Below are positions 5,474 through 8,400 of a stretch of 64,000 nt of DNA, piece by piece. The DNA lies in the NCBI GenBank assembly GCA_965112735.1, contig OZ218952.1:2232001-2296000 (forward strand), given 5' to 3'. This stretch comes from Phaeosaccion multiseriatum. Lineage: Eukaryota; Protista; Ochrophyta, other classes. The notes under the pieces were generated by a model. The model saw only the letters and a program-made list of their open reading frames with translations. It had not been told where the DNA came from and searched no databases. A program made the position numbers and the translations under genes. How positions within the stretch are numbered: the stretch's first letter is position 1; every line of letters begins with the position of its first letter.

Positions 5474-8400
5474 ATGCAGCTCTTCGTGGCGACACCAGAG
5501 GGGAAGCAACTCTTGGTTGGTCCATTTCGAGGGAGTGACGACATCTCTGCGATTCGCCGCCAGCTTCATGCCAAAAGACAGGTGCAGCAATGTGGGGTGG
5601 TTGGGGAGGGAGATATGGGAGGATGGAGAGGTGGAGGGTCGTCTATGCTGCTGGGTAGCCGGGCGTTGCGGATGCAGTTCGCCGGGAAACAGCTCGTGGA
5701 AGGAGTGGCCCTGGAGGACTACGGGCTAGTGCAGGGGGCTACGGTGCACCTGCTGGGTCGATTGAGGGGAGGAGCACAGCTTGGAAAGGTCGTTAAGGGG
5801 AGAAGTCCGGTCAAGAAGGCCGGAGGGAAGCCCAAAGAGTATGCAGAACTCCAGGCCAAGTACAATTCGATGCAGGTGAGGAGGAGGAAGAAAGGAGGGA
5901 GGGGAGGAGCGAGAGAAGGAACGGAAGGAGGGGAGGAGGACGGTGCAACTCGACGCGGAACTTGAGTAACTCTATTCGTCGCCTAAGTACCTACTTTCGC
6001 TGCCCTCCCCTTCCCTCCCCTGCCCTCCCCTTCCCTCACCTCCACTCCCTCTGCCGTAACCTAACCCCCACACGCACACACGCGCGCACGACAGGATGCT
6101 GACGCCGCCCGGCAGCAAGCCATCGCAGCCAAGCAAGAGCTTAAAACTCGAGTGGCCCAGGAGGAGAAGAACAGCAAGATCAACAGGCTCAAGGTGCAGA
6201 ACCAGTGGAGGAAGATTATGCGCCTCACCAAGGTGGAGTCTCTCCGGCGAGACATTGAGATTTTGTCGCAGAACCATGAGCGAGACGTGGATCGGAAGGA
6301 CGCCATTATCCAGATGCTGGACAGGGACTTGGAGGAGGCTGAGGACCAGTTCCAAACGGCGCTGAGGAGCAATCTGCAGAACATGGACGCCCTCATCGAC
6401 CTCCAGGTGGGGAGGGAGGGAGGGAGAGAGGGAGGGGAGGGGGCAGGGCAGGGAGGATGGAGCAGTTGGCAGGGCTTCTGTTCATTGATCGTTGACACTC
6501 CATCCTTTGCTTTCTTCTTATTCGCGATACTCTCTGCCTCTCTCTCTCGCTGTGTGTGTGTATGTGTGTGTGCGTGTGTGTGTGTGTGTGTGTGTGTGTG
6601 TGTGTTTGTGTGTGTGTGTGTGTGTGGAGCAGGACTCTCGCCTGCTGGAGTTGGAGCAGGAGTTTGAGGCAGAGCTGCGCACGCTCGAGGCGGAGTTCAC
6701 CACGGAGCGTGAGGCCATCATCACACAGCACGAGTCGGAAGTGAAGGAGCTCACAGACATCATGGCGGCAGTGGCTGCGCAGGAGGAGGAGCGGGAAGCA
6801 GAGGTGGGTCGGACCGTAGAGGGAAAGGGAAAGGGAAAGAAACGGAGTCCGTAGAGAGAGAGGCAAAGACCAAGAGCCAAGAGACAGATGGCACGAGCGG
6901 AGGGACGCCGTTTGGTGTGCTAGTATTGAATTGGGGTACCCCCTCATGCACTCACGGTCACACTCAACCACCACCTACCCACTCACCCACCCACCCACCC
7001 ACAGGCCAGGCAGGAGCACGAGCAGCTGCGCGAGGAGGTGCGCAACAAGAATCTGGAGGAGATCAACGTACTGCGCATCACCCTGGACACGCAGATTGAG
7101 GATCTCGAACAGCACTTCGAAACGGCCCACATCAACTACCTGCAGAACACCGACCAGCGCACAACGGGTGAGAACGACGACGACGACGACGAGGAGGAGG
7201 AGGAGGAGGAGGAGGAGGAGCAGTAGCAGTAGTAGTAGTAGTAGTAGTAGTAGTAGTAGTAGTAGTAGTAGTAGTAGTAGTAGTAGTAGTAGTATTAGTA
7301 GTAGTAGTAGTAGTAGTAGTAGTAGTAGTAGTAGTAGTAGTAGTAGTAGTAGTAGTAGTAGTAGTAGTAGTAGTGGCAGTAGTAGTAGTGTGTAGTTATC
7401 ATATCGTCATGTGTTCTCCTCACCACCAAGCTGTTATTTTATCCCCCTCCTCACCTGTGCTCTATATACATGTGTGTGTATATGTAGACTTCAAATACTT
7501 GACCAGCCGTGATCAGGAGCTCTCCCGAGAGATTGAGGTGAAGATCCGCAAGATTGAGCGCCTCCAGAACTCTCTGCAGCACTGGAGGGCCAAGATCGCG
7601 CAGAACGTTATGGATAACGCAGAGCGCAACAAGCTCATGACCGAAGAACGTAACGGCATCCAGGGCCACTTTCAAGTGCTCAAGGGGCAGATGAACAAGT
7701 TCAGGGAGGCGCAGGTGAGAGAGGGAGAGAGAGAGAGATAGATAGATAGAGAGAGAGAGAGAGAGCGAGGGACAGAGAGACAGACAGACAGACAGAGAGA
7801 GAGTGGGGGAGAGCATATGGGATGGTGCGTGGGTGCGTGGAGGCGTGGGTCAGGATGGGGTGCGTGCGTGCCAAGGGGGGAGGATTGTCAATCACGGTCA
7901 GCTCTTTCCCCTTTTTACCGTTTCATCGCCCTTCCCTCCCGTCTACCCTCTCCAGGCGAAGCGGCTGAGTGAGCTGACGCAGAATGCCAGCGCGGCGAAG
8001 AAGCACTTGAAGCAGGAGAGCGAAGTGGCCGAAAACATTCTCAAGCTCGCGGAGTGGGCGCGCAAGATGGAGGCGGAGCACGAGAAGGTAAAGGAGCGGG
8101 GAGAGGAGGAGGGGAGGAGAGGAGGAGAATAAAGACTCCCGTCGTGTTGGTTACACCCTTTTCCTCCTCTCCTGGCCCCTCTAACTCTGCTCTGCCCGTG
8201 TGCATAATCTCGCTGGTTCCCACCCACCCACGCACGCACGCACGCACCCACCCACCCACCCACCCCCCCACTCACGCACCCACGCACGCACCCACACACG
8301 CACGCACCCACGCCAGGTGCTGCCCTTTTACAACGGCACGCACTCGGAGGAGGTGGAGCGGGACGCGGAGGAGGCCCTGAGCAAGGAGAAGGAGGACCTT

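Follow-up and report, generated by a model that had tools for sequence, protein, structure and literature searches.

In the ubiquitin-ribosomal protein precursors Ub-eL40 (UBA52), Ub-eS31 (RPS27A) and FUBI-eS30 (FAU), an N-terminal ubiquitin (Ub) or ubiquitin-like domain (Ubl) ending in Gly-Gly is joined in frame to a strongly basic protein that is prone to assembly. The two parts occur fused in some lineages and unfused in others, and unfused eS30 starts at the fusion junction. To our knowledge, natural fusion precursors of the ubiquitin type beyond those of ribosomal proteins are few. The stretch analysed here (hereafter the window) comprises 64,000 nucleotides of contig OZ218952.1 of Phaeosaccion multiseriatum, a heterokont alga that has Chrysoparadoxa, brown algae and xanthophytes as its close relatives, and contains at 5474-9074 on the + strand the eight-exon gene of the axonemal protein DRC2/CCDC65, whose first exon places a Ubl ending in LRGG in frame before DRC2 (Table 1). 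The Ubl-DRC2 fusion shares with the ribosomal precursors all of the properties listed above, including the start of the unfused partner at the junction. It differs from them in that the partner is an axonemal coiled-coil protein, that cleavage is predicted here, and that its Ubl is far more divergent than ubiquitin and carries loop insertions. A second group of described systems consists of Ub-actin, Ub-P1, Ub-NiSOD and other lineage-specific ubiquitin fusions of Bigelowiella and Guillardia (Sibbald et al., 2019; PMC6332867). These algal fusions resemble Ubl-DRC2 in their non-ribosomal partners, which include a cytoskeletal protein, in their patchy occurrence among protists and in being easily missed by automatic gene prediction, whereas in Ubl-DRC2 a divergent Ubl takes the place of canonical ubiquitin and the fusion extends over much of the stramenopiles. 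That survey makes no mention of flagellar proteins, dynein, "sperm tail" or CCDC65 (PMC6332867).

Integral Ubl proteins such as Rad23 and parkin likewise carry an N-terminal beta-grasp domain on a larger protein. Their Ubl, however, has no conserved boundary Gly-Gly and is not removed, whereas in Ubl-DRC2 the Gly-Gly and the residue that follows it are the best conserved positions. The DRC2 of model organisms, as far as we know, begins directly at the Lys-rich segment, without a Ubl; the statement of a preliminary description of the locus that DRC2 proteins lack such a domain held for these usual model organisms and failed for the stramenopiles, many of which possess it. In its other features the window DRC2 resembles that of Chlamydomonas and animals (CCDC65, FAP250), with an NYD-SP28 region, a putative NYD-SP28_assoc region, a coiled coil that is colinear over its whole extent and a Lys-rich N-terminus (PMC10266980). 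The comparisons presented below suggest that Ubl-DRC2 is probably a fusion precursor of the ubiquitin type whose partner belongs to a new class, and in which the Ubl would be a removable pro-domain of DRC2 (probability of about 0.6).

The presence of a Ubl with an intact LRGG in codons 1-100, as proposed in the preliminary description, was supported by four lines of analysis. Translation of exon 1 recovered the strings MQLFV, FAGKQL, LEDYGL and TVHLLGRLRGG on which the proposal had been based. The Pfam ubiquitin family (PF00240) matched with 27.7 bits against a cut-off of 25.4, the match being limited to residues 65-98. The AlphaFold2 model, calculated from an alignment of 39 orthologous N-termini, had a mean predicted local distance difference test score (pLDDT) of 80, with values above 90 within the fold, and its secondary structure elements were arranged as in a beta-grasp: strands 3-6 and 12-15, helix 24-41, strand 66-69, short helix 80-83 and strand 90-94. 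Foldseek comparison with the PDB returned ubiquitin for all of the top 50 matches (E about 2e-7; target-normalised template modelling scores mostly 0.74-0.89). These predictions indicate that the domain is a genuine ubiquitin fold and not a chance match.

The Gly-rich loop within this domain, also reported in the preliminary description as an insertion, has an intron-like base composition (GC of 0.69/0.58/0.54 at the successive codon positions), and residues 42-56 were disordered in the AlphaFold2 model (pLDDT below 50). An overlooked intron was rejected after every in-frame GT/GC-AG pair in 5560-5700 had been listed: no pair spares strand 3 with a credible donor, and the candidates measure 39-123 nucleotides (nt) compared to 200-330 nt for the real introns of the gene. 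Brown-algal homologues hold longer, variable and always in-frame insertions at the same site. The segment is thus best described as a translated loop that is predicted to be disordered.

Downstream of the Gly-Gly the frame stays open and reads on as AQLGKVVKGRSPVKKAGGKPKEYAELQAKYNSMQ, and a helix begins at residues 121-133 of the exon 1 product. The sequence, the Pfam searches and the Ectocarpus alignment all agreed with the earlier description of a basic segment, with no stop after the Gly-Gly, followed by a clean phase-0 GT-AG intron leading into DRC2. Exon 2 matched Pfam NYD-SP28 with 76.4 bits (E 1.9e-21; cut-off 22.1) and showed 85% identity to the DRC2 of Ectocarpus fasciculatus. The spliced product aligned with Ectocarpus DRC2 over residues 1-553 at 64.5% identity, unbroken at the junction, and was colinear over the same residues with brown-algal and Chrysoparadoxa DRC2 in general (64-69% identity). 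The last exon, taken alone, scored 22.8 bits against Pfam NYD-SP28_assoc, which is under the cut-off of 27, and aligned to the C-termini of the orthologues. According to the list of open reading frames (ORFs), 5474 is the earliest in-frame ATG downstream of a stop.

Searches for an N-terminal Ubl and Gly-Gly in orthologous proteins indicated that the fusion is widespread in stramenopiles and that the window represents one member of a broad family. A word-based search with exon 1 returned 28 short gene models, one of them from Ectocarpus sp. 13, all of which carry ...LGRLRGGAQLGKVVKGRSQV and diverge past this point, at the intron that is read through. On the Ectocarpus sp. 13 contig, the next gene on the same strand after the Ubl model is an NYD-SP28 gene. 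In addition, an exhaustive HMMER search with exon 2 retrieved many DRC2 proteins in which the match starts 80-170 residues in, the N-terminus being Ubl-GG, a profile search brought in further cases, and Pfam ubiquitin was matched by 34 of the 39 aligned orthologue N-termini. The junction Ubl-GG-A-x-LGK-x-VKG is common to brown-algal, Chrysoparadoxa, xanthophyte, pelagophyte and Incisomonas orthologues, the carriers including Ectocarpus spp., Undaria, Cladosiphon, Chrysoparadoxa, Tribonema, Heterococcus, Aureococcus, Chrysophaeum, Pelagophyceae CCMP2097 and Incisomonas. In the DRC2 tree, the window protein was sister to Chrysoparadoxa (support 87), and both fell within a clade of six (support 98) that also includes brown algae and xanthophytes and whose members all carry Ubl-GG.

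Transcript data of relatives place the Ubl and DRC2 on a single mRNA. In one pelagophyte-like organism, four contigs derived from MMETSP bear a 592-codon Ubl-DRC2 ORF preceded by in-frame stops in the 5' untranslated region; a 628-codon fusion ORF lies on an intron-free 2.1-kb Logan contig, and the fusion ORF of Incisomonas was called complete. Two separate genes for the Ubl and DRC2 were also considered and rejected, since there is no stop between them, they lie too close together to leave room for a second promoter and the transcripts of relatives are continuous. In public gene models (Ectocarpus, Logan) the locus is often broken up or cut short at the intron that follows ...KGRSQV, which leaves the Ubl exon as an orphan small protein, and the fusion is therefore missed by annotation pipelines.

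Conservation was highest at the junction, defined here as the 13 columns GG plus AQLGKVVKGRS (5768-5806). In the 39-row alignment of orthologue N-termini, median pairwise identity was 0.77 for the junction versus 0.27 for the Ubl. The only invariant columns were G99, G104 and G109, while A101, K105 and K108 were conserved in at least 90% of the rows. The second Gly (G100) was Gly in 33 of 39 rows, and the residue immediately after it (P1') was Ala in 36 of 38. A wider set was formed by 82 retrieved proteins, near-duplicates included, in which the motif is preceded by 60 residues or more. In these Ubl-bearing relatives the tail was GG in 71, GS in 8 and GA in 3, and it was followed by Ala in 80. 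The residue preceding the GG is variable (R, C, F, Y, E, L or V). The Incisomonas clade combines a Ubl very near to ubiquitin with the tail LLGS instead of LRGG ahead of AQLGK.

The same boundary is marked by orthologues without a Ubl, which were found in a bicosoecid, the labyrinthulid Mucochytrium, Triparma and further lineages. These proteins start mostly with M-A-x-L-G-K, otherwise with M-V/P/T-x-L/F-G-K, and in 28 of the 32 Ubl-less relatives the initiator Met is aligned exactly with the second Gly. In three of the Ubl-less transcripts the frame is closed by stops just a few codons before the Met, which confirms that these Met starts are genuine. The coincidence is repeated in a second DRC2 subtype, in which ...LRLRGG-GPKKK corresponds to M-GPKKK. 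As judged from the alignments, removal of the Met from the Ubl-less forms would yield the same N-terminus as cutting after the Gly-Gly. Across the well-supported branches of the DRC2 tree, five or more changes of the Met-start state are required, which indicates that the boundary was reused independently.

A removable pro-domain would combine these observations as follows. The Ubl would be translated together with DRC2 as a single precursor, and a deubiquitinase-type protease would cut after Gly100, as in the ubiquitin and FUBI precursors of ribosomal proteins, so that mature DRC2 would start at Ala101 with the Lys-rich motif AQLGKVVKGRS. Cleavage after the Gly-Gly is probably the best reading of the data: the upstream residues are dispensable in many lineages and the Gly-Gly is kept where they are present, for which a need to remove them is the simplest explanation. 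Deubiquitinases cut Ub-X fusions for any X but Pro, and an N-terminal Ala is stabilising. Before its release the Ubl would serve DRC2 in cis, either by aiding its folding or solubility or by capping the sticky basic tip until assembly. We infer both the identity of the protease and this chaperone or cap role, the latter being plausible. The side of the N-DRC (nexin-dynein regulatory complex) that faces the neighbouring doublet is thought to be the site of an electrostatic link that limits sliding. The N-terminus of DRC2 in Chlamydomonas is located at the linker end of the complex (PMC4294676), on this same side, and DRC2, DRC4 and DRC11 aim Lys-rich flexible regions at the neighbouring doublet, where they probably bind glutamylated tubulin (PMC10266980).

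Several points weigh against a removable pro-domain. The conservation counts hold near-duplicate brown-algal sequences and are phylogenetically non-independent. GS or GA replaces GG in 11 of the 82 proteins, including the entire Incisomonas clade; such sites are poorly cut by canonical deubiquitinases, and in lineages such as Incisomonas the Ubl may stay on DRC2. In oomycetes the leader has just 14-45 residues, consisting of a strand-5-like stretch and RGG, followed by AQLGKAVKGRSK. A hidden upstream Ubl exon was ruled out by the upstream DNA of Phytophthora infestans DRC2, where 900 nt read in all frames contained in-frame stops and nothing Ubl-like, and the short leader is real. A relative bearing the full Ubl branches beside the oomycetes in the DRC2 tree, and the comparison indicates that their leader is a decayed Ubl with a GG end that is still conserved. 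Such a leader would lack the Ubl fold by which a deubiquitinase could take hold of it; its RGG would be either a tail recognised by another protease or conserved for some other reason. The proposal of a cleavable precursor, made in the preliminary description, is thus favoured by the Gly-Gly, by Ala at P1' and by the Met at the second-Gly position, and is weakened by the GS/GA clades and the oomycete leaders. In the window itself, a run of 12 G (8446-8457) breaks the DRC2 frame of exon 7 as assembled. At this run, the contig of one sequencing run has four additional G, which restores the frame, and that of another run from the same sample has three. A micro-intron was rejected, with GT-AG candidates of just 20-29 nt, and uncertain homopolymer length is the more likely explanation rather than a sign of a pseudogene. 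Finally, the four sequencing runs found for the organism are contigs of one sample; over 4900-9300 they cover introns and break at microsatellites, and they are therefore DNA and uninformative on splicing or transcription start.

The GS/GA tails and the oomycete leaders would fit a Ubl that is a permanent N-terminal domain, comparable to the uncleaved ones of Rad23 or parkin, at the tip of the N-DRC linker, contacting the neighbouring doublet or partners, with GG-A-x-LGK-x-VKG serving as a binding motif and not as a cleavage site. GS/GA variants occur in clades with an otherwise well-kept Ubl, and RGG persists in oomycete leaders without a fold for a deubiquitinase. A precedent is given by the "ubiquitin-like protein", not named in the main text, that was detected by tandem mass spectrometry in highly purified Chlamydomonas N-DRC (PMC4294676). 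Nevertheless, the lineages with M-A-x-LGK show that DRC2 can function with nothing upstream of the Ala, a permanent domain does not explain why the first Gly is invariant or why Met and Gly coincide exactly, and the poorly conserved surface of the Ubl (median identity 0.27) is more in keeping with a domain that is discarded than with one used for docking. A permanent domain is on balance rather unlikely. The Chlamydomonas protein also admits a "Rosetta stone" interpretation, which we hold to be improbable, in which the Ubl partner is separate in Chlamydomonas and is delivered 1:1 as the front end of DRC2 in stramenopiles, the oomycete leaders being processed by an RGG-trimming protease that has no need of a Ubl fold.

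A Ubl that is cut off and then leads an independent existence, either conjugated through its Gly-Gly to flagellar targets or bound as a small N-DRC subunit, would make the fusion a pointer to a partnership between Ubl and N-DRC in trans elsewhere. The LRGG tail, which is intact in the window and its nearest relatives, and the Chlamydomonas mass spectrometry result are in line with it, but the fast divergence of the domain, the variable residue before the Gly-Gly and its repeated loss or decay disfavour a dedicated E1/E2 or a fixed binding site, and such independence is highly improbable. The release of a new conjugatable modifier, which the preliminary description had entertained, is itself unlikely in view of the identity of 0.27, the decay in oomycetes and the several losses. 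It is very unlikely, lastly, that the Ubl lies outside the DRC2 protein of P. multiseriatum, whether because transcription starts inside or after the Ubl with translation from Met133 (ATG 5870) or because the ORF is a decaying remnant. Codon bias is weak in residues 1-62, with GC at third codon positions of 0.54-0.58 compared to 0.80-0.89 in the DRC2 exons, which speaks for such a reading. Against this, a start at Met133 would drop A-x-LGK-x-VKG, the most conserved N-terminal part; the ORF is open from 5474 and its fold is predicted with high confidence; and the fusion is kept in all of the nearest relatives, that is, in the six-member, all-Ubl clade with 98% support, with continuous fusion transcripts in relatives. 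The segment after the Gly-Gly, whose motif resembles the eS30 N-terminus by eye, was also considered as a relic of eS30. This was not supported: phmmer against PDB sequences gave no ribosomal protein, and the family listing of the 39 N-termini contained no ribosomal S30 family.

Literature searches brought up no paper that describes a fusion of a Ubl with DRC2. Automatic annotations already pair the two domains, as in the JGI label "Sperm tail/Ubiquitin family", in Pfam lists and in a Tribonema "flagellar associated protein"; the reservation of the preliminary description that prior annotation might remove the novelty applies to these automatic records and not to published descriptions. If a removable pro-domain is correct, Ubl-DRC2 would be the first ubiquitin-type fusion precursor of a structural axonemal protein. 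The fusion spans brown seaweeds, bloom-forming pelagophytes and, in reduced form, oomycete plant pathogens. The series from full Ubl through short RGG leader to bare Met start pinpoints the expected start of mature DRC2, and it singles out the conserved N-terminal DRC2 motif A-x-L-G-K-x-V-K-G.

Table 1. Features of the DRC2/CCDC65 locus and its upstream region (positions in the window).
Feature	Position	Strand	Basis
Intergenic region, 400 bp, presumed shared promoter and 5' untranslated region of the divergent pair	5074..5473	.	ORF list and sequence
Exon 1: Ubl, Lys-rich N-terminal segment, start of coiled coil	5474..5875	+	Translation, 134 residues
Ubiquitin-like beta-grasp domain, residues 1-100, C-terminal end LRGG	5474..5773	+	Pfam PF00240, AlphaFold2, Foldseek
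Gly-rich loop inserted after helix 1 and before strand 3, approximately residues 40-62	5591..5659	+	Predicted disordered, in frame
Gly99-Gly100, predicted cleavage site, cut after 5773	5768..5773	+	Column conservation
Predicted mature N-terminus A-Q-L-G-K-V-V-K-G-R-S, then Lys-rich tail, residues 101-121	5774..5836	+	Junction identity, unfused orthologues
Intron 1, GT-AG, phase 0	5876..6094	+	Sequence; orthologue protein alignment unbroken across junction
Exon 2, NYD-SP28 domain of DRC2	6095..6406	+	Pfam E 1.9e-21
Exon 3	6633..6803	+	Colinearity with orthologues
Exon 4, phase 1 at end	7005..7167	+	Colinearity with orthologues
Exon 5	7488..7714	+	Colinearity with orthologues
Exon 6	7956..8087	+	Colinearity with orthologues
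Exon 7, contains 12-G run 8446-8457	8317..8567	+	Colinearity with orthologues
Last exon with stop codon, C-terminal "sperm tail" region	8814..9074	+	Aligns to orthologue C-termini

The introns of the DRC2 gene are mostly microsatellite, comprising (GT)n, about 190 bp of (TAG/GTA)n after (GAC)n and (GAG)n, (GA)n/(GACA)n and (CCCA/CGCA)n. These arrays lie at 6540-6630, 7170-7390, 7720-7800 and 8210-8315, and the short-read contigs break at every one of them. A coiled-coil gene at 3488-5073 on the - strand is placed head-to-head with DRC2, its start lying 400 bp from the DRC2 start; none of the Pfam families matched it above cut-off, and it may share a promoter with DRC2. Downstream, at 9584-11545 on the + strand, a long ORF opens with a tandem array of some eight Cys/His-rich units, each following the pattern GC-x-N-x-A-x-x-GG-x-C-x-x-HGA, and continues as very Ala/Pro-rich low-complexity sequence.

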